Of a stretch of 64,000 nt of DNA, positions 11,677 to 53,284 are shown piece after piece (the stretch's first letter is position 1; every line of letters begins with the position of its first letter). This stretch comes from Callorhinchus milii. Lineage: Eukaryota. The stretch spans positions 13,950,001 to 14,014,000 of the forward strand of contig NW_024704754.1 in the NCBI RefSeq assembly GCF_018977255.1, in the 5' to 3' direction. Under the pieces are notes generated by a model, which was not told the origin of the DNA, did no database searches, and saw only the letters and a program-made list of their open reading frames with translations. The position numbers and the translations under genes were made by a program.

Positions 11677-11910
11677 ATAATAATAATAATAATAATCCTT
11701 GCATTTGATATAGCGCTTTTCACATCGGGAGGACGTCCCAAAGCGCTTCACAGAACACACTGTAAAATGAATTGACTGTATATTTGTGGGCGAACGTGGC
11801 AGCCAATTACGCACAGCAATGTCCCACAAACAGTCATAGATTGAAAATGGCCAATTTATTATTGTTTTGGGTTTTGGAGGGATTATTATTAGGCGTGTGG
11901 AGTAAGGAAA
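11677..11910 (-). mobile_element. Headless SINE of the same family
   Basis: (TAA)n tail, stem-loop and Deu-like core on the minus strand. The tRNA head is missing. Confidence 0.8.
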
Positions 11911-11999
11911 CTGAGATTTGGAGCAACAGCTGCTGGAAGACATTACCTGAATAGACAGACAGGGCCTCAGTTTAACATCTCATTCCACAACAGCCATGA

Positions 12000-16170: not shown

Positions 16171-19089
16171 TTTTTAAAAGAGCAATACTTTTCAGTCCCT
16201 ACCTTTTACCCATACCCTTGTAGTTTGATAGAATCATAGAAATTTACAGCACAGAAGAACTGATCAGAAAAATCTAATGTTATTCTGTAAAACCATTCTA
16301 TCCTACAATTTAAGACTGCATAATTTTAAGAGAAAAATGGTTTTCAGGCTAAGATTAAGTGAAATTTTAGTCTATATTAATGACTCTGATGCAAAAATCT
16401 CTATACCCCTCAGCCCATTTCTTCGCCAAATAACTGTCTTAATTCCTTCTTGAATTTGTTGACACAATCTAATTCCACCCCATTCTACATGTTCACCGTA
16501 ATTAAATCATAATTCTCTTTTCACCTGCACTCTTCTCACTTGGGAATCAGCACCTTAGGATGTCCTCCCAACGTGAAAGGTGCTATACAATTGTAATTTG
16601 TTGTTGTTGTGTCAATGATATATGGACTTAATGCATGTCAACAATAATAAGTCAAACAATATCCAGCTTCTGTAAGGCAGAGTTTACACCGTCATAAAGC
16701 CCACAACTTGTGTGGGAATCAACATTTTTTTTAAAAAATGCATTGCAAAAGGTCAGGCTTCTCTAAACTGGAAATTTACATCCCACACAAATATACTGTT
16801 TTATTGTAATTTGGCACCAACGAAAAGGACATAACACTTCACGTTTTCATATCAGCTAAAAAGTAATTGAAATTGCACCTTAAAAGGAAATGGGCCTATT
16901 GATTATTTAGGATATCACTGACAACCACTCAATGTAGATTTCTTTAATTGCAGTTTTGCTGCTGGAGGGTGTGCTGTTTGTGCTGAACAATAATGAAATG
17001 GAGTGGAATAATCAGTAAGGAGGGACTGACAACAGAGTCTGTATTGAGCCTCACTTTTCCAAGACCAGATAGGGGCTGACTTGCTCTCAGTCCTATCAGG
17101 GTTTGACTCCTTGGCAGGAGGGCTTGTGGAATGAGGAGTACAAACAGCTGATTGAAATCGATCATTCGCTCATGTTCACTCGCTATTGTGTGGTATTGTT
17201 CCATCTCTCAAGCTCTTGTTGTGTCTTCAGGCGACCCAGTGGGTAATGCTGACTGAGCACTGTGCCATGCGCAGCTCAGGTTTGTGATTGACTCCCTGCA
17301 ATACCTTCAGTCTACACAGACGGATTGGACTCTCTCTAAAACCCTCCTGTGCAGGTTGGACATTTCTTCTTAGTGCCTGTGGTGCCTTTTGCGTTGTGTA
17401 ACTTAATATATTATCTTAACTTTGAATAAATAATGAGCTTGAAATAAGACTGTACAACATGATATGCTTCTAAAAAAAAGTTGAAGTTGTAAAGGATGTG
17501 TTTAAAATTGGAGTTTTGAGAGGGTAAATAGACAAATTATTTCCAGACCTTAAACTGAGGATTATCACCAAAAGAAAAGAAAGTTAGAAGCATATTTTTG
17601 CACATAGAATGTGGAATGTCTCAGAATGTGGAGTTCCTTATCACAGGTGGCTATAGAAGTTGAGTTCCTAGAAGAATTTAAAGGGGATTAATAATAATAA
17701 TGATGCATTTTCATAAAGCACTTCAGAGGATATCCTTTTTTCGTATTTTGTTGGCAAATGGATTGGATAAATACATTTAGATAATTCAAATTAAGAGACT
17801 GTAGGGAAAAAGCAGGGGAATGGGATACAGTAGAGAAGCACAAACATGATGGACTGAATGATCTCCTGTGGTGTCATAAATAGATCTACAAGTGTTGAAC
17901 TGTAGGCATCAGTTTGAGCATTATGGCCACTAAAAGGTTAATGCAACCAGTCATTAAATGTTAATTGAGAATCCCTTGACTTGTTAATTAGTTTGAAATG
18001 GGGGGGGGAAATCTTTATGGATTTATTGAACAAATATTCTGCAACAATAAATAAATTGACTATGATTCCATTAAGTTGCAGACTGGAAAGAATAAGTCCT
18101 GTCTTTCAGCTCAGTGTTACTAAATGTCAACTGTCCGCGCAGTCTTACGATATCAAAGTCTTAATCAAATTGACATTTTCACGTTCTTGTGCTCACTGAT
18201 TTATGAATTGCTTCAATTCTTTGACCTTTGGAGATGTATTGAGTCGTTCATTAGTCATACATGAGTGTGTGCCTGTGAGGCTGTTTCTCTGTGCGTTGCA
18301 TTGTTTCTATTTTATTTTAATGCCCTTTCTTGGCGCTCCAAGCCCCCTGCACTAGTTTAACAAGAGTGAAGATCTTACTGTGCCAGCAGCTCTGCTTCTT
18401 TAGCTTAGTGTGAAGGAGCCCTGCTCTGGCAGAGGAATTAGAGCACAAAGAAGGTACGGAGTAACTGAACTGTCTGATTTATAATGAAAATGAAGCGCAG
18501 TGTTTTGTGTAAAGTGAGAATTAGCAATTCTGTTTAGGGTAATAGCAGAGTAATAATTAAAAGTAATATTGGGTCTAGCGGATTTCTGATTTTTGATTCT
18601 ATGACATATTTGTACTAACCAATATGTGAATATCTTTTGCTTCAACATCTGTGTTTGTGTGGTTAAGCCCGGCATTCGTTTCTAACTCATTAATGCACTA
18701 GCTGGTGTGAAACTGAGCCACACAGACCAGTTTCAACTCCTGTTTAATGCTGATCTCACTGATGACATTGCTCCAGGACTCTACCCCACGTGAAGGGTTC
18801 TATATCAATGCAAGTTGATGTTGTTGTTGAGGAAGGTGAGGGTGATGGTAAAGGAATATTGGAATCGAGCCAGCCTCCGTGGCGGTCTTGGTAGTCCGAT
18901 TCCTGAGCCAGGACGATCTGCAATATTCCATGGCACTGCTGACGACAGCACAGTGCTGGCTCATCGGCAGAACCCGGAAGGGCAGACCAGGGAGTCATCC
19001 CACTCAGCTCCTGTTAACCCTACTAGCCAAAGCCCTAATGGGTAAGGTGGTCCTAGCTGGATAAGCAGCGGCAAAACTTACCGGACAGC

Positions 19090-19900: not shown

Positions 19901-19962
19901 CTATGTATTGTTATTCATTTTATCTTATTTCTGGTCCATTTACGAGAATCTTCAGCAGATTT

Positions 19963-20290
19963 GTGGAGTCCTGTAGCTCAGTGGTTAGAGCACTCGCTTT
20001 GCAAGTGAGAGACTTGAGTTGAATTCCAGGCAGAGGGCGAAACCTTGGGCAAGTTTCCTTACTCCACACAGAGCCTAATAATAATCCCTCCAAAACCAAA
20101 ACCAATAATAAATTGGTCATTTTCAATCTACGACTGTTTGTGGGACATTGCTGTGCGCAATTGGCTGCCGCGTTCGCCCACAAATATACAGTCAATTCAC
20201 TTTACAGTGTGTTCTGTGAAGCGCTTTGGGACGTCCTCCCGACGTGAAAAGCGCTATATCAAATGCAAGGATTATTATTATTATTATTAT
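19963..20290 (+). mobile_element. Full-length tRNA-Ala(TGC)-headed SINE with Deu-like core and L2-type tail (young subfamily)
   Basis: A-box TAGCTCAGTGG, anticodon arm CTCGC-TTTGCAA-GTGAG, B-box GTTGAATTCC, core gactgtttgtgggacattgctgtgcgcaattggctg, stem-loop tail and (TTA)n. Confidence 0.88.
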
Positions 20291-21111
20291 AGATAGATAG
20301 ATAGATCATACTGGGCAGGTGAAATAGGCTGAAAGTTGTCACTTTGATACAATTCTGTTTACTATAAACCTCTCCATTGTAGTAAGTAATGCTCCTTTTA
20401 CATTGGGAGGATATCCCAAGGAAGATATATAACTGGGTATGTGGGGGCGGAGGCTGCTGACTGTAGAACTATTCTCCCCAGCATGAGTCAGTGTTACAGG
20501 AACGAAACACATTTTGGTCCTGAGAAGCATCCTTCTCTACTGTATTATCATTACAGCATCAAGTAGTTTCTTAAATGAGTCTCCACCAACTGTTGAATCG
20601 TTTCAGCTCTGGATTATAATCTGTGTAAAGAAATATTTCCAGTGTGAGTCCTCTTCTCTGCCCTGCCCTGCACTCTGCTTCTTATCACACTGTCTTGGTG
20701 TATCTCAAAGTATTGTTCAGGGCTAATTGCTCAATCGCATTTATATACGATACAATCATAAGTTCCACTCTGAGAAGATGACAACCTGATAAACACTCCA
20801 TACTAGACTGACAATCACAGATTCTGATTTAAAAATTTAACTTACTGTCCTTTGATTCCCATCTTTTTAAAATGAAGCACAGTTCCTTATAGATAAATCA
20901 GCTCTGATAGCTGTTGCAAACATGTTTTGCTGCATTGAAGATGAATGCTCGGAAGATCTGTTAAGATTTGTTGAATGCATTTACATGATGTCAATTCCTA
21001 GTGTCAATTCATAGTGTCTTAAAAATAAAATAAGAAAGTTAAGATTATCTATCTATTGTAATCTATATAGACTAATTGAATATGTGTGCTGTGCAACTCG
21101 CAAAGGCATTA

Positions 21112-21348
21112 CTGAGCTGAGTTAATGTGCGAGAAGACAATGAATGGCCAGTGTCTCAGTCCACAGATGTAGGAGTTTACAGAGCAGTTCCTGCTGAACA
21201 AATGCAGCCCAGTTTCAATACTGTGTGTGTATGTGTGTGTGTGTGTGCGGACAGTGGTTCGTTGTCGATGGCTCATTGTGCAGGTATCAATGTGTCTGAT
21301 TGTTCTCTGCTCCTCTCTCCACGTTCTCTCCAGGCTGTGATCCACACA
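21112..21348 (+). promoter_or_regulatory. Putative proximal promoter/5'UTR of gene 1
   Basis: Directly upstream of the ATG exon and shared nearly base for base with 61790-62024. Contains an Ets-like CAGTTCCTG, an E-box CAGATG and a (TG)n tract. Function is inferred. Confidence 0.4.
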
Positions 21349-21400
21349 ATGAGTGCCTCTCACTGCATGCTGGCACTGCTGCTCGCGTGTCTCATCCAGG
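21349..21400 (+). CDS. Siglec-like gene 1, signal-peptide exon (MSASHCMLALLLACLIQ-G)
   Basis: ATG at 21349 with A at -3, hydrophobic leader, and phase-1 donor G|gtaagg at 21400/21401. It joins in frame to the V-set exon. A strong acceptor (...ttctctccag, 21333) lies just upstream. Confidence 0.8.
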
Positions 21401-21627
21401 GTAAGGCTGTTTCACCCTTTAACACTATTATCTCTCGGCTTTAACTCAGGCATCTGATGTTTTTTAAGCATTGACTGAGTGTACGGATGTGTTCTATGGT
21501 TCACTGAAGTTGTTAATTACCTGGCAATTGACTAGAATTTTAGATACAGCTCCTCCGATGGCTCAGTAGGTTTATTCAGTGAGGATCTGAATTCTATAAA
21601 CAGAGAAGGTCATGGTTCCCTGGTCAG

Positions 21628-21945
21628 TCAGGGCGTTTTGGACCTGAGCTGGGAGTTGGGGTCAGGAGGGGTGGAGTAGTGGAGGGGCAGGGTGTGGGGT
21701 GGTGGGAGTGGGAGGGTGGCCAAAGGCACAGTTGAAGAGGAAGGTCTTTAGATGGGACTTGAAGGAAGCAAGAGAGGGAGTGAGGAGGAGGGATTACAGG
21801 ATAGAGTTCCAGAATGTGGGGGCAGAGATGCTGAATGCTCGACCACCATTGATGGGCCTGGAAGCACGTGGGACCTGAAGCAGGCCGGAGTCTGCCGAGC
21901 GGAGGGAGCGGACAGGCTGATGTGGGGTTAGGAGTTTGGAGAATC
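21628..21945 (-). mobile_element. L2 3' fragment in intron 1
   Basis: Reverse complement matches the L2 3' region of 4599-5258. Confidence 0.7.
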
Positions 21946-23750
21946 ACACATGAAGATTAGCCACTTCAGCTTGATTTCTTGATAATTACATTTTCAGGAG
22001 AGAAAATATACATATTATACTGACATGTACATTAGTTTAATTTATTTTATCTTTAATAGGAAATAATTCACTTTTACGAGAATATTTTAGAATGTAAGTG
22101 GCTTTTATACCGTAAATGTTCTAAGTTTTGTTTCAATCTCATTGCCAATTCTCTGATGCTCTCAAACAGAGCTACAACTGCGAAGACTGTTTCAGGGCAA
22201 CCTTGTTACCACGTTATAAGTGCAGCACCAAAAATGCTGATTTGGGTTGTCAGGTCACCACTGAATATCACTTCCTGCAGCTGCGTGTTCATGGTATGTG
22301 TAAGAAGCATTCCTGCTGCCACTTCCTTTGTGTATTCATACATGCACAGAATTCAGGAAGTGATGTTAGTGGCATATTTCCTGTACATTCTGGCATATAG
22401 ATAGTGACCTGAAGTTGTACATTTTTAGTGCAGGAAGCATCACAGTCAGCTTGGAAGCCTAAAGTTTCTGCTCACTATAAGGCCATAGGACATCAATGCT
22501 ATAAGTGACGGCAACGCTATATCCAGGGTATTAGGACTTGGCGGCAATGTATTTTGATGAGCTTCTTATCTAAATGAAGCATCAGTTCAAATAAGGAAAA
22601 AAAAACTAAGTGCATACAACTGAATATTGTTAACTGACTCTGAAAAGACTGGGCATGATTGTAGCTGTGCAGCATGTTCTCTAGGACCTCCCTACCCAAA
22701 AGAGCTTTGATTTGCAGACTTCAGCTTGTAGTCTAGGCTGACATTCCAGTGCAGTATTATTGAGTAATGTTAGAGTTGTTTTTCCTTCAGATGTGATGTT
22801 ATTGAGCTCCCATCTGTCTGCTCATGTTAAAGATCCTCTGACAGTGTTTGAAAAGAAATTGGAGCAGGTGCTGGTGTCCTCGTCAACAATCCTCCAGCTC
22901 AATCGATTATTCACCTCATTGTTGTTGCGGCTCGGCATTGGGCTCTGCCACTGTTAAGCGCTCTGAGATGCCGTCCCTATAAAGGGCGCTTTATAACTGC
23001 AAGTTGTTGTTGTGCAACCCCTGTTTGTGCTCAAAACTGCTGCTGTATTTCTCCACAGAATTTCTCACCACACTTGACAATAATTACTTTGAGTCTTTTG
23101 ACATGTAAGGTATTATAAACATGTAAGTTATTTTTATCTTTCTATGGATATCTTTCCAACCGTGTTTGGATTATTTTAGAGCTGCCTGGCTTTGTCCAGA
23201 TCATAAGACCTTGTTGCATTTTTACATGTTTAATCCCAGGGAGACTTCCCCCAAAAGGATTTTATCAACTTGAAAACAATGACTGGGACCCAGAACCTTC
23301 AACCAAACGAGCCATTAATGTTCCATCAAATGCAAAAAAGGAATAATAAGAATCCTTGTATTTGCTATAGCACCTATAATTCTGAAACACCTCAAAGTAC
23401 TTCACAGGTAATTGTTGACATGTGTGGTGACTGTGTTCGTAGGTAAATGTGGAAACAAATGTCCCACAAATAAAAATGAAATGATTAAAAACAGAAGTCA
23501 CTGGGAACCCTTAGCAGGTCAGGTAGCATCTACAGAGAGAGGATATTTTGAGCTCATCGTCTCCTGTCCTCCACCTAATTATTTCCTGTGTCTTTCTTTC
23601 CCTGCCCCCTTCTCCGTTTGTCCTTATAAACTGCTCCCTTCCAACATCCCCCAGTTCTGATGAAAGGTCACCGACCTGAAACGTTAACTCACTTTTCTCT
23701 TTCCATAGATGCAATAACAGCCACTGATGTATGTGTCTCTCCTCTTGCAG

Positions 23751-24113
23751 GGTTAGTCTGCCAGTGGTCTGTCTGGGTTGATACTTCTGCGTCTGCTTGG
23801 GAAGGCGAAACTGTGCTTTTGAACTGCTCTTTTGAGTACCCGGAAACAGTCCGAGATACCCAAGCAATAACTGCCAGGTGGCTGAAGAACTCTCCTTTCC
23901 CCAATAACAATCAGGCTGCCGAAATATACAACAGCAGGAATACCAGGAGGCTCTCGCCTGACATAACATTGGTGGGGGATCTGTCTGAGAAGAACTGTTC
24001 CCTTCAGATAACCAACATTAACAAAGTTGACAGTGGGATTTACTACTTCAGGTTTGAAATGGGACAGGGCAACAACTGGTCAGGAGATCATGGCGTCAGA
24101 GTCTCAGTTTACG
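23751..24113 (+). CDS. Siglec-like gene 1, V-set Ig domain exon (sialic-acid binding type)
   Basis: Acceptor cctcttgcag|, donor G|gtaatt, 363 nt, phase 1-1. Translation GLVCQWSVW...VLLNCSFEYP...WLK...GDLSEKNCSLQI...DSGIYYFRFE...NNWS. Cys in strands B and E with YYFR instead of YYC is the established Siglec V-set signature. Arg codon at 24050-24052. Confidence 0.93.
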
Positions 24114-24201
24114 GTAATTGCTTCTCCTTGTCTTTTCTTTTAACTTACTGTTTGTTAACTTATTGACTAAAGGCACCTACCTCCCTTTCCAAATTGTACA
24201 G

Positions 24202-24510
24202 GTCAACCAACGAAGCCAGAGATATCCATCCCGATGGAACTGCTTGAAAGCGATGAGATGAGCACTATAACCTGTTCCACCTCCAACGTTGATCAACGTG
24301 GCAGAGCCCGGCTCAGCTGGGAGGGCATCTCTGAATTGACAGAAGATTTGCCAGTCATTGAAGAGCAATTGTCTGGATCTACCTGGACAGTCATCAGTAA
24401 AGTCATGTTCATCCCATCATACCAGCACCATCAAAAACTTATCAGATGTGCTGTAGACTACATCCCCTTCCCTTATTCAGAAGACACGAATGTCACACTA
24501 CAAGTGAAGT
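24202..24510 (+). CDS. Siglec-like gene 1, Ig domain 2 exon (C2-type)
   Basis: Acceptor ttgtacag| after an 88-nt intron, donor T|gtaagt, 309 nt, phase 1-1. GQPTKPEISIP...ITCST...LSW...IPSYQHHQKLIRCAVDY...VTLQVK resembles domain 2 of the CD22/MAG/sialoadhesin type. Confidence 0.9.
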
Positions 24511-24607
24511 GTAAGTTACTGGCTGAGATTACCTTCAAATAACCCAAATTTGGCATTCACATATTGAGGCATCTTATTGCAGTATAACTGTAATAGAATG
24601 GATAATG

Positions 24608-24676
24608 GATAATAAATTTGTGTATGGATCCCTATACACTATTCATGTATAGAGACCCATACACAAATTTATGATC
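24608..24676. repeat. 26-bp near-perfect inverted repeat (hairpin) in intron 3
   Basis: Arms 24612-24637 and 24647-24672 with 2 mismatches and a 9-nt loop. Confidence 0.9.
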
Positions 24677-26777
24677 AGTCCCACAGATAAATGTTCTGCT
24701 GCAGTAGACTGGATAAAAGTAAGAAAAATGTTGCATGCTACATCTGATGCTGCTTGTTCATTTCAGGCTGGTTCATTGCAGGGTTATGTTGGCAATGCAA
24801 ACCCTTAATGAAAAGAGTTTCCTGGTAGCAAACTTACCCCAAACGATTTTTGGCATCTGATCTCCCGTTGCCTTCACAATAAATCATGAAGCAAGATGAC
24901 ACACGTGGAACAATAAACCAGAATCCGACAAGGTTTCTGAATGTGAAGACTATGGCTGCTCTAAAGAGCTACACTTTGTGTCTGCTCTGGCAATGGAATA
25001 TAAAGCAAGAATGAAATAAATAAGACCACCTGAAGGGAAAGCAAAGAGCTCAGCCCATGGTAGAGCATGATTTGGTGGTTGGGTAGTCAACTAACTTCTC
25101 CAAAACATCAGGGAAGAACTACCAAGGATGAAGAAATATGTGATACAAAATTTCAAAATGAAATAAATAAAATATTTTACACAAAGTTTAAAAGATGTCT
25201 GGAGCAAGTTATTAGGAAGCCCAGTGAAGCAAACACACTAAAAAGGATTCGAAAGGTGTTTGCTGAGAGAGGAGGGATTGAGGGATTTGGTCAGATGATA
25301 GAAAAGTGGGATTAAAACCTACCAAAAGGAAAAGCTCTGTAGTTTCCAATTACATTTCTCTTGTTACTAGTGGCACCAAAGTTTGTGGAACAATGCCATC
25401 CTAACTCACCAGGGAACAGGGTGATAAGAAGTGGGTTTGTGCTAGTAGTACACCCAATGAGTGCCCAGCTGTGGTATCATGTGGTGGCTGTCAGACATCT
25501 AAATTCCTCTCTGGGATTTCTGAGCCAATGGGTCAAAGCTGGCGAAGAAGATACCTGCTGCCCTCTAGTTTTGGGTCAAATGTATAGATAAGAGACAAGA
25601 AAAGGGGAAGAGAAAATAAAATGACCTAAAATGGGATGCAAAAGTGTTTTTATAGGGTGGTTGACTATGCGATCAAATAATTCCATGATTTTACCTCTCC
25701 ATAAACCAGTGAAAATAATCTATTGCTATTTATCCTGTCATTACCTTTAAAAGGCTAACGTGACCACATCCACCCCCCTCTCCTGAGCCGTAAATGAAAC
25801 CTCTCATCCCTAGTAATGTCTGTGGTCAAGCAGGTTTACGTGGACTGTGTAGAAAGAGGGCTTAATGTACCCGATGGCCTTTCCTCAATCCATGTGCCTT
25901 CTTATGTCTTTAGGTCACCTCCACCTTTCAACACTCTTTGATTGACTGTGCAAACAATGTGTCGCCCACACCATCGATTCCTGCAGAACACAAACCATTT
26001 ATCGCACGGAGGCATTAGCTCATCCCATTCTGTACTTTCAATACTGTCCCCAATCAACTCTTTCTGAGGCATTCCTATTTTCATAGAATAGAATTGTAGA
26101 ATTTTACAGCATGGTGCAGGCCATTCAACCAACCATTGTTTCTTCCGACTCTTTGAAAGAATTCATCATTCAATCTACTCCTCCATTCTTTACTCACACC
26201 ATTTAATTAGGTCAAAATTCCTTAATGAATAGCACTAGTATCAATTAAGATGTACCACACAATTTGGACAGTAAGTGAGAATGGTGATTTTTAAATAACG
26301 TTGATAATTCCTGTGAGAAGTAAGCATTTATTTTTTTAGGATACAGTACCTGTGTGCAACCTATGAAAGCAATAACAAAGCACATATTCCCTATTGAACA
26401 TCATAGCGCTGACCAGGAACAGTTATGCCTTTGATGAGTTATAGCTACATACTCAATTAGTCTGTGAACTTTCCAGAAATTAACACTCACAAACTGCAGG
26501 TTTCTAACGTTAACATAACGTTTTAAGATGTACCTCTTTGACCAAGATGTCATCTTTCCCCTCCCTACCTCTCGGCTCCCACCTCCAGCTTAGGTGCCCA
26601 TCCAGCATTGCCAAGTGCTTTGAGAGATCCTCCTGACATGAAAGTAAATTGTATTGTATTGACATTTTGGCTTCAGAAAAAGAAATGATGTCCATGTAAA
26701 CAGAATTTCAACCTTCAAATGTCTGGACAACTAACACATTGATGTGCTTTCTTTGGCGCCTATTTTTCTGCTTGCAG

Positions 26778-27056
26778 ATGCTCCAAAAAATACAATGGTT
26801 TTAGTGAATGGAACGCAGGAAGAAATCAAAGAAGGGAATTGTGTGACCCTGGCTTGTGCGAGTAACAGTCACCCTGAATCCAATTACACCTGGTACAAGA
26901 AAGATAGAATCACGGAGAACACAGAGATCTTAGATACCACAAGCAACGTCATGTTGTTCCATAAGATATCCAGGTTAGATTCCGGGTTCTACAGCTGCTT
27001 GGCAGCGAATTATCTGGGAAGCAACATCGCCACAGAAGTAGAAGTCGACGTTCAAT
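26778..27056 (+). CDS. Siglec-like gene 1, Ig domain 3 exon (C2-type)
   Basis: Acceptor tttctgcttgcag|, donor T|gtgagt, 279 nt, phase 1-1. (Y)APKNT...EGNCVTLAC.SNSHPESNYTWYK...DSGFYSCLAANYLG. Confidence 0.92.
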
Positions 27057-27491
27057 GTGAGTATTTGGCTTCCAATGTTACCAGTGAAGACATTCTGTAT
27101 TTTAAGGTTAATAAAAGGCACTTATAACGTATTACTCCACACAGCATGCACAGCCAAGAAATGGGCTATGCTTGCATGTAGACAGTTTCTGAATATGTAG
27201 GAATTAGGAGAAGATGAAAAAAATGAGAAATGTTCACACCGGAGAAGAGAAGGCTCAGAGGAGATGTTATTGAAGTATTCAAGATCCTAAAGGATTTAGA
27301 TAATAAACCTGGAGGAGTGGAGGTTCATGTGGAGTATAAACACCAGCATGGACTACCTGGGGTGGATGGCTTATTTCCATTCTGTACACTGATCTATGTA
27401 ATTTAATGCAATATGTTTGCCTTATTAACAAAAGTGGACTTGACATCAGAAAAAGAAACACAATTCAGATTGAATTATTTTACATAAAGTG

Positions 27492-27876
27492 AATAATAAT
27501 ATACTAATAATAATCTTACCATTTGATATAGCGGCTTATCGCATCGTCGAGACGTCTCAAAGTGTTTCACAGAATATACTGTAAAGTGAATTGACTGTAT
27601 ATTTTGTGGGCAAAATGCAGCAGCCAATTCCGCACAGCAGTATCCCACAAACATCTGTGGATTGAGTGACCAAATTATTATTGTTTTTTAAGGGATTATT
27701 ACCCCCGGAAAGCAATCTGCCAATCAACTAACAATCGTGTACCTACTTACTGCTAGGTAAACAGAAGCGTGTGGAGCAAGAAAACTTAGCCTAAGATTTT
27801 GCCTTACCCGGGAATTGAACCTGGGTCCTCTCGCCTGCGAGGCAAGTGCTCTAACCAATATGCTACAGGACTCTAC
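27492..27876 (-). mobile_element. tRNA-Ala(CGC)-headed SINE, older subfamily (intron 4)
   Basis: Reverse complement shows the tRNA head with a CGC anticodon, the Deu-like core and the tail. Confidence 0.82.
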
Positions 27877-28054
27877 AGGTGCTAGTTTGCAGCACATAGG
27901 ATGTTGGTCTGGTAACATGGAGTGGGACATGAAAATGATCCCAATGATTCTCAATTAACATTTAGGCAGAAGGAGGCCATCTGGCCCATTACACTCTGAG
28001 ACTCCACCTGGCGTGGAAGGCGCTATATAAGTGCAAGTTGTTGTTGTTGTTGTG

Positions 28055-28435
28055 TTGGCTCTTTAAAACAGCTACCCAACTAGTCCTACTCCAGTTCTTA
28101 CTCCAGAGCGCTGCAATTTTTTTCCTTTTTAGGTACCTATCCAATTCCCTTTTGAAAGCTGTTATCAAATTTGCTTCCTTCACCCTTTCAGGCAAGTTCA
28201 TTCCAGATCTTAACAACTCGCTGGGTAAAAAACTTCTCCTTGTTTCCCCTCTGGTTCTTTTGCCAATTATCTTAAATCTGTGTCTTCTGGTTACTGACCC
28301 ACCCACCAGAGGAAACAGTTTTTCCCGATCTACTCTATCAAAACCCCTCATAATTTGGAACACCTCTATTAAATCTATCCTCAACCTTCTCTGCTCTAAG
28401 GAGAATAATCCCAACCTCTCTTGTCTCTCCATATA
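28055..28435 (-). mobile_element. CR1 3' end (intron 4)
   Basis: LGLFSLEQRRLRIDLIEVFQIMRGFDRVDREKLFP...FKRELDRYL. Confidence 0.85.
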
Positions 28436-28666
28436 ACGGATTACATAATAGATTGTGTAGCAACTTGAAGAGGAAATTAGATAATTATTTGACAAAAGAA
28501 ACAATTGAGCATTCTGAAAGTTATAATGCCTGGTTATTTTTATGTTTTGCTTTATTTTGGGGTCAGAAGGACCATAATGCCTTTTCCAGTCCTTTATACT
28601 CCTAAATTCCAAAGGTTACCAGACCTCTGCTGTTGTTTCCTCTGTGAATGGAAAAGCCCAGTTGCA

Positions 28667-28732
28667 TCCCTGATTCTCAACTGACATTTAAGCACCTCAG
28701 GATGATTAAATGTCAGTTGAGAATCACAGGGA
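28667..28732. repeat. Perfect 21-bp inverted repeat (hairpin)
   Basis: tgattctcaactgacatttaa (28671-28691) and its exact reverse complement (28706-28726), with a 14-nt loop. Confidence 0.9.
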
Positions 28733-28929
28733 TAATTCCTCACCTTCCATTTCATGTCACCATCCCACTACTCTGTGTCCTGCAAGCTAGATTGCTCTCT
28801 GTTGATACACAACTGCCATAGCACTATACAAAGCATTGCTCTGTTGCAATCTGATGTGCATGTTCTCCCACACAATATAGTTCATCCCCTTGACAGTATA
28901 TCTATCTACACTTCTGCAAACATTTTTTG

Positions 28930-30540
28930 CTCCCGCCCCCACCAGGTCACCTGCTGCGCATTCCAAGTCTCCATCCTTGGCCCCTCCTACTCCTCATTTA
29001 CATGCTTCCTCTCAGTGATGTAATCCGCAGACATCAGTCAATTCCATCTGTATACAGATGACACCCAAATCTACTTCTCTTCCTCCAGCCGTAACCCCAG
29101 GTCCACCAATGTTGGGTCCTTTTGCTTGTCAGACATCAAGGTCTGGATAAGCATCACATTTCTGCAGCTGAATGTTGACAAGATCAAAGCCATCCTTCTT
29201 GGCTCCTGTCAATGTCTTCTCATCTGTGACTCCAGCCTCCTGAACCTCCCCTGCCTATCCCTTAGACTCACTGAACCTATGCGCAACCCAGTGTCAGGTT
29301 CAATCCTCAGCTTTCCTTCCTTCTCCACATCCGATCCCTGACTAAGACTGTATTCCTCCACCTCAGTCACATTGCCCACCTCCAACTGTATACCTCACAC
29401 CCAATGCAGCCAAAGCCCTTCTCCATGTATTGTGGGGATTTTGAAGTCGATCCGTTTGGGGATGGGGAGCCAATAGAACCTGGCCAGAAAATGGTGAGAT
29501 GTGGGTACGGAGTTTGGTCCGGGTCAGTATGCGGGTGGCAGAGTTCTGAATGAGCTGGATCTTGTGAATGGTGGAGCTGGAGAGACCGGCGAGGAGTGCA
29601 TTGGAGTAATCCAAGCGGGAGGTGACAAACCCATGCACAAGAGTTTCGGCTGCATTTGGGGTAAGGTACGGTCGGAGGCAGGCAATGTGGCCGAGGTGGA
29701 AGAAGGCAGTCCTAATCAGGGACCGGTTGTGGGGGAGAAAGGACAGCTAGGGGTTGAACCAGATGCCTAGGTTGCGCACTGGTTTGGTGAGTCTGAGGGA
29801 GAGCCCAGGGAGTTGAGGAGTTTAGATCCGCAGGAGCAAAGACGTAAGGAATATGGCTTTCGTCTAGTCCATATTCAGCTGCAGAAAGTTTACGCTCATC
29901 CAGGCCTTGAGGTCTGCCAGACAAGCTGATAGAACATTGGTGGGCATGGAGTTGGTACTAGAGGAGGCAAAGTAGATTTGTGTGTCATCGCACACACGTG
30001 GAAGTTTACCCATGTCTGCGGATGACATCACCAAGAGGGAGCATATAGATGAGGAAAAGAAGGGGGCCAAGAATGGATCCCTGGGATACCCCCAAGTGAC
30101 CGGGAGGGGGACGGGAGGAGAAACCATTTGTTGAGATGAAATGGAGGCGGTTGATTAAGGAGGACTTGAATCGTGTGAGTGTGATCCCACTAAGGTAGAT
30201 GATGGAAGAGAGTCGATGGAGGAGGATGGCATGGTTGACTGTGTCGAATGTGGCAGAGAAATCCAGGAGGACGAGGAGGCAGAGGGAGCCCTGGTCACAG
30301 ATAGAGAGAATACCATTTGTGACTTTGACAAGCGCTGTCTCTGTGCTGTGGGCAGTCGGGGCGAAAACCAGACTGCAGGGGCTCGAGGAGGGAGTGGAGG
30401 GAGAGGTGTGACCGAAGTTGACCTGCAACAATGCATTCCAAGATTTTGGCAAGGAAGGGTAGGTTGGAGATGGGATGGTAGTGGGAGACCTTTTCACAAA
30501 CCTTTCTCTACAACCAAATGAATTGATTTTCACAATGGTA
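28930..30540. mobile_element. Two L2 RT fragments tail-to-tail (+28930-29425, -29430-30540)
   Basis: [11 protein letters not shown]...LLDFSATFDTVNH...GVSQGSILGPLLFLIYMLPLG on the minus strand, and a diverged + copy of the overlapping region. Confidence 0.8.
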
Positions 30541-33500
30541 ACCAACAGCAAAACCTATCTTTAAATTGGAATGAGATCACTGTGATTATTGCAGAAAATA
30601 AATACTCGGGCTATAGCAGTACAAATTGCAGTGTGCGAGAAAGTGGTCTGAAACGCTGTACACTGTCCAACGCCTTGGGACATCCTCAAGACGTGAAAAG
30701 CACTATACAAATGTAATCTTGTTATCGTTGTTGTTACCTACACCAAATTTCCAGCAGTAACAGCCAGGAACAGTAAATAATTGATTAGAAATGAGGAGTA
30801 TTAATATTCACAAGGGGCAGTTGTGGTTTCAGTTGAAGTTGAAGCCTGTGGGTGCAAAGAAGACAGAGTGGTAAACTGTTATCGTTTGTCAGCGGTACTA
30901 CCCTGTGAATTTGATACCCATGTGACATGTATACTTGGGTTAATATGCCAATCAATTGGGTCACATTCATCATATATTCCTCTCTGCTTTAGGTAGTCAT
31001 TTCAGAAAGATTGTGTTTTTACTAGTTGAACAAATGGCTCTGCCTAAAGTCTGTGCAGTTTAATACCAGACCGGTTTTATAGCGGAATCCTGCTAACCAC
31101 AGGCCTGGAACACAACTTGCGCAATTATGCACTGAAGTTGTCCTGTTGTCAGTGAGCCCTGAAACATGTTCACACACAATTTGTCTTTCCCATCGGTAAC
31201 ATACTATATTTATATTTCTACTCAATATGCATACAATGAATAGATTGAGTTGGACCGTGCAGAAATTACAGGAACATATTAGCTGTATCCTTTGGTAAGA
31301 AAGGTTTCTTTCTCTTGCTGTCATTACAAGTTGCAGCTTCACATTTTGTTTTAAATTACCACTCTTATCAGTTTATATATTGATCACAGAAAGCCCTGCT
31401 CTATTGCTGACGGCCACTTATTAGTAACAACATCAGTATGATGCTTCAGGTATTTTTCGTCAGTTTAGCTAGCAGTAAGTAGGAACCCGGTTGTTAGTCG
31501 ATTGGTAGGTCGCTTTCTGGGGGGTAATCCTTCCCCCCAAAATAATTATTATTTTGTCAATCACTCTATGACTGTTTGTGGGATACTGCTGTGTGCAATT
31601 GACTGCTACGTTTCATCCCACAATACAGTCACTCCACTTTACAGTATATTTTGTGAAGCGCTTTGAGATGTATCGAAGACATAAGGCCTATATCAAATGC
31701 AAAGATTATTATTCATAAAATCCAATTCAAAACTGCGCTACTCATATCCTCACCTGGACAGAATTCCATAACCCCATCACCCCAGTAATGCCCGACTCCA
31801 CTGGCTCCCTACTGCAGAACGGATCAATTTCAAGATCTTCACATTCACATGAAATCACTTCATGCCCTGGTACCCCCTACCTCTCCAACTTGCTTACACC
31901 CCAATTTATGCTTAGCAATGACCCACAAACAGCCATGGAGTGAATGACCAATTTTACTGGGAGAATTGTTGGCCAGGACACCAAGAGAAACTCTTCTCTT
32001 TTCGAATGGTGCTGTGGGATCTTTAATGTCCGCCTGAACAAGCAGATGTGACCTTGATTTATCATCTCATCTGAAGGGAAGCACCTCATACAGTGTAGAA
32101 CATTGTAGTGTCAACTTGGCTATGTCAGTTTAAAGTCCCGAAGTGGGGATTGAACCCACAACCTTCCAACCCACAGAGCCAGACACAATGTTTAGCCCCA
32201 GTATCTTTGCCCCTCTATGTTCTGCCATTGAGCCAGGGTGGCTGGTCTGTCATCAACGGTGCTCTGAAGTCCTTCAAGAAGCAGACTAGTAAGCCCACCA
32301 CAGAGGGTTGACTTGATTCCAACATTCAGTTGCATGTCATCTTTGACATCTTTCAGCTCCAAATGCCCTGTTTACTTTCCCCCCGACCCCACCTCCCCAG
32401 AGGAGACTCATCATTTGGTCATTTATAAAGATATTTGAGATTTGTGCCCTCACGAGGTGGATAGCAGATATACTGCGACTTCCTGCAAGTTGTTAGACAC
32501 AGGAATTTATAAACTTCTTCATTCACATATAAAGTTCTTCTGTAAACTATACACTTACTACCATGCATCTGTAACCGTTGCCTGACCATTACAAAATTCT
32601 TTGCATAATTCCTGCAGTGAATTGTAATTTCAGCTTTTAATAGTAGACCATTTATTTCTACAAAAACACTGGACTTCAAGTCAGTGGGATTTGTTTCCAT
32701 TGCCTATCGTTTCAGCTAATTTCTATTTTTATTCATTTGAACTTGCACCAAACCATAAAGATGAAAACAGGAATGAGAAGCTCAGACTATATTTCTTCCC
32801 TTGGTGAATATCTAGACCACTTATGTCAGCTGGTTATATGACTGATTTTATCCACTTCCCAACTGAAGTTACTGGATAGTAATCTAGATCTATTATTATA
32901 CATAAAAATAATCCTTGCATGTGATACAGTGCAATGTTGAAATGTCTCAAAGCACTTCATAGGATATAATGTAAAGTGATGTGACTGTGGATTTTCTATC
33001 TTCTTCGCCTCTCCACCTCCCCACCTACCCCAGTGACGGTCAAGCCATTCATCCTGAATGAATTAATTTAGAAATCAGAATGATTTGGGGGAAAATAGAA
33101 GAAAATTCTTCCCACAGAGGGTGGTTGGAATGTGGAATTTGTTGTTGAGGCAGAGTCCATAGATTCTTTCAAAAGAGAATTAGATAGATGCTTGAAGAGG
33201 AGGAATATTAAAAGGGCAAGGGTACGATTCTATGATTTCCCTAAAAATACTGAAGTTGCAATTGAAAGAGAAAGAGGTTTTAAGCATAAGCACTCAGCCA
33301 TTTACCTTCACTCTGAAGATTAACTGCAACTTCACAAGTAGGAAAGATCAGAGAGAAGCGCTGGTAACACCCTGTGAAGTTACTAAGATCAGGAAGATTA
33401 AGAGAAGGGAGTTCCACTTAGTGTCGTGGCCAAAATCCCCCAGAAAAAAACTCACTCATTCATGGCTGTTTGTAGCACACTACTGTCTGCAAATTGGCCT

Positions 33501-35908
33501 TTGTGTTTGCGCATAAAATAAACAGTTACTCCACTTTACAGTGTATCCTGTGAAACACTTTGAGGCATCTTAATCTGATAACAACAACAACTTGCATTTA
33601 TACAGTCTCCCTCACGCAGGGTAGCGTCCCAGAGCGCTTGACAAAGACGGAGCACAATGCCGAACCAGGGGAGGGGGCAGGTGACCATAGCCACGGTCAA
33701 AGAGGAAGCAGGCGACCTGAAGATGGGGAAGGAGGGGGCAAACCAGAGAGATGGAGATGAGGCACTATGTATCAAATGAAAAGATTGTTATTACTATATT
33801 ATTAAGATAGATTTATATTAAAAAAAATAAAAACTTTTCGTATTGCACCTTTCATGTTGGGTTTACTGTGAAGTGGAGTGACTGTATTTTCTGTGCAAGC
33901 ACAGCAGCCAATTTGCACACAACAGTGTCCCATAAAGAGTGGAGTGTCACACTATGTGAGTTCAAAACGTGTGGCTTCTGACTGAAGAGGCGAGAGTGAG
34001 CTAGTCTGATACACACAGCCTGTGATATTGGTAAAATTTCACATAATTGTCACATGGAATCTGTTATGAATTGTTGCTTATTTCCATCCTTTTCCAAAGA
34101 ATGGGTGTGGAACTGAACTCTGTGCTTCCCCCGACTGTAACACGATGGTTGTCTGAGGATCGCTTTGCTGCCTAAACTCAGTCAGGTTCCTATGAATCAG
34201 ACAAGAGACTCCAGCATGGAAAAACAGTGTCCAATGCAGTTTGGGAATGCACTGCATTATTAAAGGTGCCGTCCTTCGGATGAGACATTAAACCAAATTC
34301 CCATCTGCCTCGTTAGGTGACCGGTGAAGATCCCATGGCACTGTTCAAAAAGAAAAGGGAGTTCTCCCAGCGTCCAGGCAACAATCCCCCAAATAAAAGA
34401 AAATGGTCACTTGTTTCATAGCTATTTGTGGAACATTGCTTTGTGCAAATTGGCTGCTGTGTTCCCCTACAAATACAGTCATTACACTTCACAATAAAAT
34501 CACGTGAAGTGCTTTGAGATATCTCAACATAATAAAGCACTTTGTCAAATGCAAGGATTATGTTTTATTAATAATAATAATGAAGCCGCTCTGCTCATTC
34601 AGTGGGATATGCGTGCCCAGGAATGCCAATCAGAATGGTATCTTCAGGGGCCTGTGAGAGTGAAGGTGGACAGATAGAGTATTATATGCTCATGCGAAGA
34701 GAATATGTACCAGGATTGGCAATCAGAGAGGCATGCCATGGAGAATCTGATTCACTCTATCTGAAGCCTCCTCAGGGAGAAAGGCAGTACCTTCTGTAGA
34801 CTAAATAAAGAGTTGAACATTCTTTGTTGATAATAATAGTCCTTGCATTTGATATAGCGCCTCATCATGTCCTTGAGACATCTCAAAGCGCTTCACAGAA
34901 TATATTCTAAAGTAGACTGACTGTGTTTTTTGTGATGCTGTCTGGCATAAGAGGTGCTATACAAGTTGTTGTTGTTGTTGTCAAAATGTGGTCTGTTTAT
35001 AACAAGAAATCCTGCAAAGAAACCAGCAAAGAAAATCCAGTTATTTTTTAGTGATCAGAACATGATTAACCCCAATATCAAGCCTCCTCCACACCCAAAT
35101 CACTCCTCAAAAAAACAGATTGGTACCTTCAGGAGACAGCTCTGGAGATGCTTCATCCCAATTTGACAATAAGGTGATAAATCAGACCTCCTTAACCTGA
35201 GGCTAATGGGATCCTGCCTGCTCTTTGGACCATAATATCACTGTTATAGATTACCAAAACAACATAACAATTCTTGCATTTGATATAGCGCCTTATTATG
35301 TCATTGAGACGTTTGAAAGTGTTCACAAGATATACTGTAAAGGATGTAACTGTGCAAACGTGCCCACAAATGTGACTGATGCCTTGTGGCTGTTTGTGGA
35401 CAGCTTTGTGTTGCTATAGCTGATACTTGCAAGGTGCTGGGTACTGCAAATCTGCAAGTTGTTCTATTCTATAAGCTAGTTCTCTTCAACCTTAACAAGA
35501 AATGTCACATGGGGGATGTTCTAGATACACCATGTGTCAGCCTTAGTTGGTAGCACTGTTGCTTCTGGGCTAGAAGACTGTGTTCAAGCTCCACGTCAGG
35601 ACTTTGAGCCCCTAGTCCAGACTGACATCTTGTGCAACACAGTGGGTGGCTAGGGCTAGAAGGGGCTCAGCTCCCCTCTTCCCCCCCCCACCCCGTCCCA
35701 GCCAAAAAATCTATCGACAGTCACTTATTGAAGGGGAGCTGGGAGAGGAAAGCCCTTAACCCTGAGGAGGACCACAGCCAGTTCTCTGAGCAGCCCCAAC
35801 CAGTGCACTCATGGGTCCTCTTTCCCCTCTCCCTAGTAATCGACAGTGCCCACCTACGTCTGGCTGCTCATCAAATATCAAATGCAATGTTTATCATTAT
35901 ATAGAAAT

Positions 35909-36260
35909 GTGGAGTCCTGCAGCTCAGTGGTTAGAGCATTCGCCTCGCAAGCGAGAGAGCTGGGTTTGATTCCCTGCACGGCAAAATGTTGGGCAAGTTT
36001 CCTTACTCTTTCCTTATGCCTCTGTTAACCTAGCAGAAAGTAGGAACCCGGTTGTTAGTGGATTGGCGGATTGCTTTTCCGGGGTTAATAAGTCCTTCAA
36101 AAAAATATAATAAATTGGTCACTTAATCCATGACTGTTTGTGGGACACTGCTGTACGCAACTGGCTGCCGTGTTTCATCCACGAAACATACAGTCAATTC
36201 ACTTTAGAATATATTCTGTGAAAGACACTATATCAAATGCAAGTATTATTATTATTATAT
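35909..36260 (+). mobile_element. tRNA-Ala(CGC)-headed SINE (intron 4)
   Basis: gtggagtcctgcagctcagtggttagagcattcgcctcgcaagcgag head, followed by core and tail. Confidence 0.82.
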
Positions 36261-36645
36261 TAGAAGACAAAGGATGTAAATCCAGAATACATTCAGATAT
36301 GCTAAGGCAGCAGGACAAGGTTCAGGATACCAGGAAATATTTTTTCACGCAGAGAAATCAACAGTGGTAACTAAGAAGGGAAGTAGAGGCCATAACAGTG
36401 ATTCTTTTAAGAAAGGGCTTGATACTGCAATGGTATGGAGAGAAAGATGAGATCAAATAAGCTGAAGAGCCTGCTTCATCCAAATCTTTTCTAATAACAT
36501 GAAACAAAAGAATTCTAGCTGCAGATATTGTTAAAATATACAATTATATCTGTATAGCGCCTTTCACATCGAGAGGACATCCTAAGGCGCTGGTACAAGT
36601 ATTATTTCTGAAGCTGTAGTAACCAAATTTAATTTGCTTTTGTAG

Positions 36646-36900
36646 ACAAACCCGATAAGGTCACCATCACCCAAGACTTGATGTATACGTGTGTGGCTGA
36701 GGCCAGCCCTCCTGCGAAGATCACATGGAAGATCAGTGACCCCAGTATAAATCTCACTAATCCTGCGGTCAGTATAATGCAGGACGTCAATGGCACTCAT
36801 TCAAGTAGCACACTCAATCTGGATACAACGGCCAACTTTTGTGTATCCTGCCTTGCTCAGAACAAACATGGGGTCACAGTCTCAGAGAAATGTCCACCAG
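36646..36900 (+). CDS. Siglec-like gene 1, membrane-proximal Ig domain 4 exon
   Basis: Acceptor ttgcttttgtag|, donor G|gtaagt, 255 nt, phase 1-1. (Y)KPDKV...YTCVAEASPPAKITW...SSSTLNL...VSCLAQNKHG...KCPP resembles the short proximal domain of MAG and CD33-related Siglecs. Confidence 0.88.
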
Positions 36901-38009
36901 GTAAGTGTAAATGATATTCTTCCAGTTACTAAAGAGTTACCTACAGCTAGAATTATTTTTTTCAATTGATGATTGTCACCAGGTTCAGGGAATTTCTGTT
37001 TCCAGGTTTTTATACAGTTTTTATAAACAAACCCAAGTTTTAGCTATGCAACAAACATTAATATTATATTAATAAAGCTGCTTAGATACCCAAGGACCCA
37101 AATTTTACCTAATCTAAGCCTTCGGACAATTTTTTCTTATTGAAAATTTGAGTTTGTGCAGAGATCTGAACGTATTTTAAAATTCAGCAACAACAACAAC
37201 AAATTGCATTTGTGCAGTGCCTTCCACATCAGGAGGATATTCTGAGGCGCTGGACAGTCAGGGATCTGAATTCAGTCTTAATTCGGAATTTGGTTCTTTT
37301 TAAGGACCGTGGAAAACCGACTTTCAAATTAATACTGAATTTACGAATGTTCCACAATTTTCCACTGTCTTAAAATTTAAGTCAAATGATCTACAGGCTA
37401 AAACTAGGTAGAATTTCATGTCTCTGCGTCTCAAATTCCTCAATAAGGCCTTAGCCTTGAAAGACTATTGTCTTAAGATTTAAGATAATTTAGAACTTTG
37501 TTAAATTTAGTGTGAATTTTGAAGCCAGTTTTCTAAATTCTGCTAAATTAAGACTGAATTGAAAAATTTTACAACAATCTTAAATTTAAATCATTGACCT
37601 TAAGCATAAGACCAGGAGAAATTTCAAGTGTCTGGAGTAGTTTTGTTATTGCAATATTAACAAAATATAACGGACATTTAAACAATTTTAAGTAGAATTT
37701 GGGTGGTTTAAATAATCTACTTCTATTTAATTCCGTATTTCCTCTCTTTGTAGAGTTATTTTGATTTAAATTGTTCTTTCTAACACAAGTTCTTTCTAAC
37801 TGATAATCCCTATTCTAATGTTCTATAACTTTCTAGTTATAACTATAAAGTTTATAACTTTATAGCACTGATGAGAATGGGGGACTAGGAATTTCATGTA
37901 GAAAGTTTCTCCCACCGCTGGATATCCCACTTCAGTCTGTTGCTCAACTTCCCTAGCTCTAGGGAGCAATTAATGCTGCTGGACCTCTTGCAAACCACTT
38001 TCCTCATGG

Positions 38010-38240
38010 TGAGACCTGGGTTCGATTCCTGGCAGGGCGAAACCTTGGGCAAGTTTCCTTACTCCACACACCTAATAATAATCCCTCAAAAAAAAAAATA
38101 ATAAATTGGTCACTTCAATCCACGACTGTTTGTGGGACACTGCTGTGCACAATTGGCTGCTGCGTTTCGCCCACATAATATGCAGTCAATTCACTTTACA
38201 GTATATTCAGTGAAGTGCTTTGAGACGTCCAGAAAACGAT
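38010..38240 (+). mobile_element. 5'-truncated SINE of the same family (intron 5)
   Basis: Starts at the T-arm gagacctgggttcgattcc and continues through the core and part of the tail. Confidence 0.78.
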
Positions 38241-38365
38241 AAGGTCACCACTGATATCACTTCCTGCGTGCGGCACATGAGCAGAAAGTGTTGCTGATGT
38301 CACTTTGGGATGGAATAGAGCACATCCACATTACCCAGGAAGTGACATTATTGTCACCCCCACAG

Positions 38366-38840
38366 ATGGTTGTCAACTCTGGTTGGACATACTGAGTTAC
38401 CCTGAAACAAATTAACTGTGGAGCGACGCTAAAATTATCCATTTTGAGAAAAGGGTTCTGTTCCTTTGAAAGTGCAAAAGGCATGTGAGCCCGGGTTATG
38501 TTTGGTCGCCATCATAAAGTGAAACAGCAATGACTTGACGGTAGTTAGATAACATAAGTCGCAGCACCAGTGGACCAATAAGATGGTTGAGAGAGGGCAA
38601 GAGTGCATTGGCTTGACATTTCAGATGGATTGTAGAGTCTCCAGGTGGGGATGAAACAAATGAGAAGTTGATAACACGATAAATCTGATTCACCAAATGC
38701 CAATAAATATTACATTTTGAGAATTCCCTATGACGGATCTCATGGATTAGTTGCAATATTGTCCGGGCGATTAATATTTAATACCTGGAGATGCCCGGAC
38801 AATCCTGGAGTCTAAGCAACCCCAACCCTACTGCACTGTC
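38366..38840. mobile_element. Probable non-autonomous DNA transposon (MITE) in intron 5
   Basis: Degenerate terminal inverted ends (atggttgtcaac... / ...gcaacccc(aaccc)ta) and a subterminal 11-bp inverted repeat at 38758-38768 / 38793-38803. Confidence 0.45.
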
Positions 38841-39012
38841 CAGTAAATGCATGTGTGCCAAGTGCATTTACACTGTAGAGAGATGAAGCTTCTTCACTCC
38901 CACCAACATGGAATCCTCCTCCCCACGCTATCTGGCTGCGAAAAAATTATCTCCTGCACCTTATCAGAACTCACCACGTGAAGAAATTATTCTGATCTCA
39001 TTAATTTCCAAG

Positions 39013-39186
39013 CTGTAACCTGCTGTATTGATGCTTGCGATAGCTCTGGCCATAATGGCACCATGTTGTCACCAGGCTCCTATACCAGGATGCTGCTGCT
39101 GATTGTGGGCCTCATTGCTGGGACTACCGTAGCCATCATAATCTTTGTTATCGTGTCATGGAAACGGAAGAAGCAAGTCATCGAAG
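39013..39186 (+). CDS. Siglec-like gene 1, stalk/transmembrane exon (acceptor at 39012 or 39075, both in frame)
   Basis: Uncharged hydrophobic run MLLLIVGLIAGTTVAIIIFVIVSW followed by the stop-transfer KRKK, and donor G|gtgagt at 39186/39187. Either acceptor keeps phase 1. Confidence 0.8.
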
Positions 39187-39813: not shown

Positions 39814-39875
39814 GAAGAGAATTGGAAAATGAGGCACAGCCAGTGATGTACACTGAAGTGCAAACAGCAAAAAAG
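39814..39875 (+). CDS. Siglec-like gene 1, cytoplasmic exon with ITIM (VMYTEV)
   Basis: Acceptor ttttgtgttgtctcag|, donor AAG|gttagt. Phase-1 splice from the TM exon gives GRELENEAQPVMYTEVQTAKK. VMYTEV fits the (I/V/L/S)xYxx(L/V) consensus. Confidence 0.72.
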
Positions 39876-39973
39876 GTTAGTAAAGGTCCTCCTAAGAATA
39901 AAGTTTTTCCTTCTGAATCCAGGGATCTTCAACAGGGAGGAGGGGGCAGGAGGTGATGGTGGGAAGTTTCTAG

Positions 39974-53116: not shown

Positions 53117-53284
53117 AGAGAGAGAGATAGAAAAATGGGAATTACTGAGCGAAAGAGAGTGGGTGGGTGGGGGCTGCAGGGTTACTGAGAGAGCACGGAG
53201 AGGGTTACTGACAGATACACAAATAGATAGATGGAGAAAGAGTTACGAAGGTGAGATTAGAAATGCTGAGGGTCAGAATGCTGT

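Follow-up and report, generated by a model that had tools for sequence, protein, structure and literature searches.

The locus in Callorhinchus milii

The DNA analysed here (the window) is a 64-kb stretch of the elephant shark Callorhinchus milii (MU249844.1:13950001-14014000, assembly GCA_018977255.1). It contains a Siglec gene, designated gene 1, and two copies of a short promoter and leader block, one at the 5' end of gene 1 and the other at a distance of 40.7 kb along the chromosome. Gene 1 (21349-40884) has eight coding exons and encodes a CD22/MAG-like Siglec with four Ig domains; a protein search identifies it as the C. milii 'myelin-associated glycoprotein-like' protein P0001 (522 aa), which the eight-exon model reproduces exactly. 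The coding exons are as follows.

21349-21400, plus strand: leader coding exon, MSASHCMLALLLACLIQ plus 1 nt, with phase-1 donor CAG/GTAAGG; exact match to P0001 residues 1-18
23751-24113, plus strand: V-set exon (sialic-acid-binding type) with the YYFRFE arginine; Pfam V-set 1.9e-11, Ig_CD22 1e-10
24202-24510, plus strand: C2-set exon (Pfam and exon model)
26778-27056, plus strand: Ig exon 3 (Pfam and exon model)
36646-36900, plus strand: Ig exon 4 (Pfam and exon model)
39076-39186, plus strand: transmembrane exon, with a membrane core free of charged residues (exon model)
39814-39875, plus strand: cytoplasmic exon with the ITIM VMYTEV (exon model)
40747-40884, plus strand: last coding exon, with a FAYANL motif and the stop codon (exon model)

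The open frames 3' of the first block copy encode a V-set, two C2-set domains, an Ig domain and a membrane segment (Pfam, including C2-set_2), and the predicted protein has the N-terminal V-set with its arginine, the C2-sets, the membrane segment and the tyrosine motifs by which a Siglec is recognised. Its orthologues in sharks and rays are 62-65% identical and are named CD22-like or MAG-like. The first intron is 2.35 kb long, and the V-set exon that follows it lies outside the block and has no second copy within the window. When P0001 is compared with the window by tblastn, only residues 1-18 recur, at 62025-62078, and no other exon is matched in 41-64 kb. The Ensembl/UniProt model of gene 1 (P0006) lacks the leader exon and begins in intron-derived sequence.

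A near-identical block at two positions

Self-BLASTN aligns 21112-21443 with 61790-62119 at 98.2% identity over 332 bp (E 1.9e-165), and these are the only two copies of the block in the 64-kb window. Their components are listed below.

21112-21421, plus strand: putative core conversion tract, copy 1 (gene 1), nearly identical to 61790-62097; made up of 237 bp 5' of the ATG, the 52-bp leader coding exon and 21 bp of intron
61790-62097, plus strand: putative core conversion tract, copy 2 (leader block of the presumed gene 2; self-BLASTN and alignment)
21422-21449, plus strand: 3' fringe of older homology, copy 1, differing from copy 2 at 5 of 28 positions
62098-62125, plus strand: 3' fringe of older homology, copy 2 (alignment and mismatch count)
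21222-21247, plus strand: microsatellite (TG)4TA(TG)8, copy 1, inside the tract (alignment)
61900-61923, plus strand: microsatellite (TG)12, copy 2, inside the tract (alignment)
62025-62076, plus strand: copy-2 leader coding exon, MSVSHCMLALLLACLIQ plus 1 nt, with an open frame and an intact GTAAGG donor

The near-identity of 21112-21421 and 61790-62097, claimed in the original prediction, is confirmed by MAFFT alignment and a count of differences, which leave a single substitution and a single indel (98.8% identity on core columns). The substitution is C at 21356 against T at 62032, turning GCC (Ala3) into GTC (Val3), and the indel is a 2-bp TA at 21230-21231 within the TG tract of copy 1. 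Mismatches are denser in the fringe (5 in 28 bp; Fisher p = 1.6e-5), giving two layers of divergence, 0.3% in the core as against 18% in the fringe. The copy 1 fringe aligns to the start of the intron in the elasmobranch blocks described below and has the same 'GCTTT' end point. Past 21449 and 62125 the two sequences are unrelated, and local alignment of 21450-21680 with 62126-62323 scores at the shuffled mean. On the 5' side about 3 of 12 positions match immediately upstream of the block, and local alignment of the 800 bp upstream of both copies scores no better than shuffled sequence. Of the predicted decay of identity over about 30 bp on both sides, the 3' part therefore stands, but the 5' edge is abrupt. 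No mobile-element termini, target-site duplications or poly-A were found at the block edges, and Rfam reports no RNA family over 20900-21700. A single N run occurs in the window (52927-53116), at a distance of about 9 kb from copy 2.

Upstream of both copies there is one further two-copy similarity, 18266-18489 against 55845-56005, which lies 2.8 kb 5' of block 1 and 5.9 kb 5' of block 2. The segments are 69-80% alike overall with a 61-bp indel, and share a 35-bp core of about 94% identity (CCTGCAC.AGTTTAA..AGAGTGAAGATCTTACT). Such a remnant was noted in the original prediction; it does exist, with only two copies in the window, but a link to the duplication is not sustained, and the segment is absent from the elasmobranch loci searched. 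Possible identities are a low-copy repeat and a regulatory element that was duplicated.

Several repeats populate the remainder of the window. Tail fragments of one abundant repeat family, in the same orientation and 65% alike, lie 200-230 bp 3' of both blocks (21680-21943 and 62323-62579). A shared ancestral insertion was considered for these fragments and rejected: the gene-1 copy is nearer to other members of the family (70-73%), and the intervening DNA is unrelated. Their placement is probably coincidence or insertion preference. A local tandem duplication lies between the genes (43103-45158 and 47744-50074 against 50087-55163), with collinear pieces that are offset by about 4.6-7.1 kb and match at 80-93% identity, and with the 52927-53116 N run inside it. 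A SINE-like element of about 330 bp is present at 11677-11912 (minus strand), 19959-20290, 51059-51392 and 57536-57857; these copies are 93-96% identical, and the family is therefore relatively young. Older relatives (80-88%) are scattered over the window. One copy of the element lies 0.8 kb 5' of block 1.

Copy 2 and the candidate gene 2

Copy 2 is on the same strand as gene 1, 21.1 kb 3' of its stop codon. The 62.1-64.0 kb segment behind it has no detectable Ig exon, and shark gene-2 proteins match no exon in 41-64 kb. Leader-directed protein searches for MSVSHCMLALLLACLIQG among proteins of 214-2145 aa returned gene-1 models only, and look-ups of P0008, P0020 and P0024 and of the minus-strand open reading frame 63035-63340 gave nothing beyond base 64000. 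A representative-protein search with the second gene (g2) of the basking shark Cetorhinus did find a C. milii protein, P0157 (UniRef A0A4W3K8J6), a 359-aa model that is 38-41% identical to the gene-1 exons and is not encoded within the window. The P0157 model begins in intron-derived sequence and has no leader exon. P0157 is thus a paralogue modelled without its leader, from which it follows that C. milii has a second Siglec paralogue with a model that lacks its first exon; current C. milii gene-2 models are likely to lack that exon, and the leader exon seems to be missed systematically in the Ensembl/UniProt annotation of both C. milii Siglecs. Synteny suggests that P0157 would be gene 2, situated just past base 64000, and that in C. 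milii copy 2 probably still serves as the leader block of a functional gene 2.

Orthologous gene pairs in elasmobranchs

The arrangement of g1 (the orthologue of gene 1) followed by g2 on one strand, each with a homologous phase-1 leader exon, is also present in the electric ray Narcine and the sevengill shark Heptranchias, which bears out the original prediction of an old duplication. The block is found at orthologous positions before the same genes in five other species, and a homologous g2 leader occupies the syntenic position in Narcine, Heptranchias, Cetorhinus and Hemiscyllium.

In Narcine bancroftii a multi-Ig gene with a product of 759 aa lies 8.3 kb 3' of the g1 orthologue P0004 and has the same orientation. 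The leader exon of this g2 is 52 nt long, is in phase 1 and codes for MSISQCILALVTMCLVQ; this exon and the g1 leader MSTAHCTLALIAMCLIQG are homologous, with an identity of only 75% over 99 bp. This diverged leader means that the target pre-existed, and hence that the duplication predates the chimaera-elasmobranch split. By keeping a homologous acceptor at the syntenic position, Narcine g2 also points to replacement of sequence and not to its insertion. The conserved TTGTGCAGGTATCAATG segment is missing from Narcine g2. In Mobula and Pristis the g2 leaders (MSISQY...) are closer to Narcine g2 than to ray g1. The ray lineage appears to have escaped homogenisation.

Heptranchias perlo has g1 (P0002, locus L005) and g2 (P0168, 'Siglec-14 X1', locus L006) in the same orientation on a single contig, with 33.4 kb between them. 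Here the predicted homogenised block recurs as an island of about 307 bp at 99% identity (L005:10357-10663 against L006:9785-10091, 3 mismatches), and similarity ends abruptly at both edges. The leader coding sequences (g1 at L005:10573-10624) are identical at 52 of 52 positions. The encoded proteins share their first 19 residues and are only 48% identical overall, with strongly diverged V-set domains. Aligned across species, the Heptranchias and C. milii islands have 5' edges no more than about 10 nt apart, and their 3' ends lie at a homologous intronic 'GCTTT'. The flanks are specific to the paralogue: the Heptranchias g1 upstream flank matches the g1 flank of Stegostoma (71% over 98 bp), and comparison of g1 flanks with g2 flanks yielded no match.

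In Cetorhinus the g2 leader is 17.7 kb 5' of its V-set exon, with no g1 exons between them. Recurring TG-rich matches in Cetorhinus g2 (L003, ~29000-68000, a locus that carries 200 N) suggest that a large simple-repeat or satellite array fills much of the first intron, of 17.7 kb or more, and of later introns.

Several motifs of the block are conserved in all of the species (CAGATGT.GGAGTT; TTGTGCAGGTATCAATG.GTCTGATTGT). A (TG)n insertion and a 7-bp insertion are common to both C. milii copies and absent from all elasmobranch blocks. The segment 21269-21334 (and 61945-62010) contains a deeply conserved CATTGTGCAG/GTATCAATG.GTCTGATTGT; some 50 nt further on come a pyrimidine tract and an AG, 15 nt before the ATG, and the arrangement resembles a 5'UTR mini-intron with its donor and acceptor sites. 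In one Heptranchias model the leader exon is entered 15 nt 5' of the ATG, at the homologous acceptor. A short first exon without coding sequence may thus be present in the block, together with a mini-intron. The NCBI model of Heptranchias g1 (P0002) starts instead in an extra exon, MRVCNPPAAQVSDGKPKAT (L005 10001-10058), about 570 bp 5' of the leader ATG, and reads through the 5'UTR from there. This extra start, which is outside the converted block, may be alternative or spurious.

Neither gene 1 nor any of the four elasmobranch g2 orthologues examined has a charged residue in its membrane core, and all five carry ITIM motifs (LVYASI, ILYACV and similar in g2); YxN motifs are present in the g2 proteins as well. 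The suggestion that the two genes form a co-regulated inhibitory and activating pair is consequently not upheld, since the elasmobranch g2 orthologues are ITIM-bearing with an uncharged membrane segment.

Block and protein phylogenies

A tree of nine block copies, built from the core columns, groups them by species. The two C. milii copies pair with support of 100/100 and the two Heptranchias copies with 80/91, and Stegostoma g1 joins Hemiscyllium g2 (99/97) with Cetorhinus g2 next to them (96/94); the Narcine g2 copy is on a long branch. Monophyly of the g2 copies is rejected (delta lnL 322, p-AU 8e-65). Within-species pairs come from three species, and the galeomorph comparison is of g1 from one species with g2 of others. 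Core identity within species is 98.8% in C. milii, 98.1% in Heptranchias and 55.9% in Narcine, and between species it is 59-85%.

The ectodomain protein tree is arranged by paralogue. The g1 orthologues form one clade (100/98), and the elasmobranch g2 proteins lie across the midpoint root from g1 with weaker support (84/96); P0157 is on a branch between the two groups. Divergence outside the tract is ancient, at 48% identity for the Heptranchias proteins and, in C. milii, 38-41% for the candidate P0157 as the one protein available for comparison. That blocks group by species and protein bodies by paralogue agrees with the predicted conversion of the promoter and signal-exon block.

Probable concerted evolution by gene conversion

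Because the block is near-identical within species and diverged between them, because flanks and gene bodies are specific to each paralogue, and because a homologous target was already in place, we interpret these data as concerted evolution by gene conversion. In all likelihood repeated interlocus conversion homogenises the promoter and leader block of two old tandem Siglec paralogues. Concerted evolution is confined to the promoter, the 5'UTR, the leader and the start of the intron. The intron and upstream DNA around the block are unalignable, which would stop conversion from spreading and most simply explains why distant species have the same tract edges.

We propose that both blocks are promoter, 5'UTR and signal-peptide-exon modules of tandem same-strand Siglec paralogues. 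The gene pair is at least as old as the common ancestor of chimaeras and elasmobranchs. The island of homology between the two genes, of about 310 bp, runs from roughly 215-237 bp 5' of the ATG to 70-100 bp past it. Non-allelic conversion would repeatedly copy this module between genes 40.7 kb apart, probably by homologous repair of a break templated by the paralogous block. The latest event in C. milii would have covered 21112-21421, and the 28-bp fringe, at 18% divergence, would be a relic of earlier events with a slightly different end point. The two layers of divergence accordingly imply more than one event, with differing end points. Both receptors would then share transcriptional control and an identical signal peptide, and hence would likely be co-expressed.

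A further reading is that the cassette of about 310 bp has been a self-contained conversion unit since before the chimaera-elasmobranch split, with near-constant edges and with only the rays escaping; we consider the case for this to be evenly balanced.

Other explanations of the C. milii block were considered. Copy 2 could be an orphan leader, a relic overwritten by conversion after the body of gene 2 was lost or moved in C. milii. The leader occurs only in gene-1 models among proteins of 214-2145 aa, the 1.9 kb 3' of copy 2 is devoid of an Ig exon, and the one candidate body, P0157, has no mapped position. Yet the open frame, the ATG and the GTAAGG donor of copy 2 are all intact, and the first intron of gene 1 spans 2.35 kb and that of Cetorhinus g2 17.7 kb, so the next exon should fall past base 64000. 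Position and strand, moreover, are those of g2 in Narcine and Heptranchias, and C. milii does have a second paralogue with a model missing its first exon, so that loss of the gene body is rather improbable. Still less probable, and given little weight here, is a single transfer of a 336-bp gene-1 5' piece to an unrelated site, by templated break repair or a mobile element and with no exchange since. The entirely non-homologous flanks, the abrupt 5' edge and the mobile-element fragments on both sides of copy 2 are what such a transfer would leave. It is difficult to reconcile with the two layers of divergence (0.3% against 18%, p = 1.6e-5), which require at least two events, with the syntenic homologous g2 leaders of Narcine, Heptranchias, Cetorhinus and Hemiscyllium, with the independent homogenisation of the same block, at the same edges, in Heptranchias, or with edges free of target-site duplications and poly-A. 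A related proposal, that copy 2 splits one mobile-element copy, was rejected, as the matches in the flanks belong to different elements.

An identity of the block as an interspersed repeat or mobile element is itself unlikely, given two copies only in 64 kb and the orthologous positions in five other species. The C. milii blocks are known from one assembly, in which a single real block might have been placed twice, but a substitution, an indel and a fringe with five mismatches tell the copies apart, their flanks are unique and different, the only gap (52927-53116) is about 9 kb away, and an independent assembly of Heptranchias has the same two-copy arrangement; very little credence can be attached to an artefact. 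Purifying selection acting alone on an ancient promoter and leader, with no exchange of sequence, would account for the conservation of CAGATGT.GGAGTT and TTGTGCAGGTATCAATG.GTCTGATTGT across ~400 My. Its probability is close to negligible, since the block is 59-85% identical between species as against 98-99% within C. milii and within Heptranchias, and since both copies share lineage-specific indels and the tree groups them by species. Repeated gene conversion between the two paralogues thus remains our preferred explanation.

Implications of the conversion tract

In cartilaginous fish, conversion covers only the core promoter, the 5'UTR and the signal peptide, and, to judge from the tails that are known, it links two inhibitory partners. 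If the exchange has been selected, co-expression or shared secretion signals would be the trait kept in step; if it is neutral, the pair shows for how long a 300-bp island of homology 8-40 kb from its partner sustains conversion. The ray lineage, in which exchange stopped, provides a natural control. Should the cassette reading be true, the tract would be among the smallest and longest-lived interlocus conversion tracts known, and it would be regulation and signal peptide, and not ligand binding, that are matched between two inhibitory receptors. A literature search, of incomplete coverage, found primate Siglec conversion and neither chondrichthyan Siglec pairs nor a tract restricted to promoter and leader. 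Conversion at the 5' end of primate Siglecs is already known, and the absence of an earlier account of the cartilaginous-fish tract is weak evidence of novelty.

Comparison with known systems

Gene 1 resembles the CD22/MAG-type (conserved, non-CD33-related) Siglecs in its Ig_CD22 V-set with the FRFE arginine, its C2-sets, its uncharged membrane segment and its ITIM. It departs from them in having only four Ig domains and a 76-residue tail. Its best non-chondrichthyan matches are 22-34% identical, and NCBI calls it MAG-like or CD22-like.

The human fetal globin genes HBG1 and HBG2 are tandem paralogues whose 5' portion is homogenised by conversion, with a poly(TG) associated with the tract. There the tract ends on its 3' side at the simple repeat, in intron 2, and takes in exons that code for the mature protein. 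In C. milii, by comparison, the (TG)n lies inside the tract, and the signal peptide is its only coding part.

Conversion at the 5' ends of primate Siglec genes has been read as matching the ligand-binding face of an activating decoy to that of its inhibitory partner. The C. milii pair is like primate SIGLEC11/16 and SIGLEC5/14 in that the 5' ends of neighbouring Siglec genes are homogenised, and the conversion mechanism is the same. The primate tracts are 97-99% identical inside with lower identity outside, and have arisen repeatedly and independently in several lineages (PMC5701461). Conversion of SIGLEC11/16 spans ~2 kb within a region of ~3 kb with 87-93% background similarity, takes in the upstream region and the V-set exon, and joins an inhibitory to an activating receptor (PMC5701461). 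The full analogy drawn in the original prediction breaks down at the sialic-acid-binding V-set exon, which is within the converted tracts of both SIGLEC11/16 and SIGLEC5/14 (PMC5701461) and outside the tract here. The C. milii tract, unlike these, is only about 310 bp long and ends 21-50 bp into the first intron, and it is set in an unalignable background between genes whose proteins are 38-48% identical and, as far as their tails are known, inhibitory in type.
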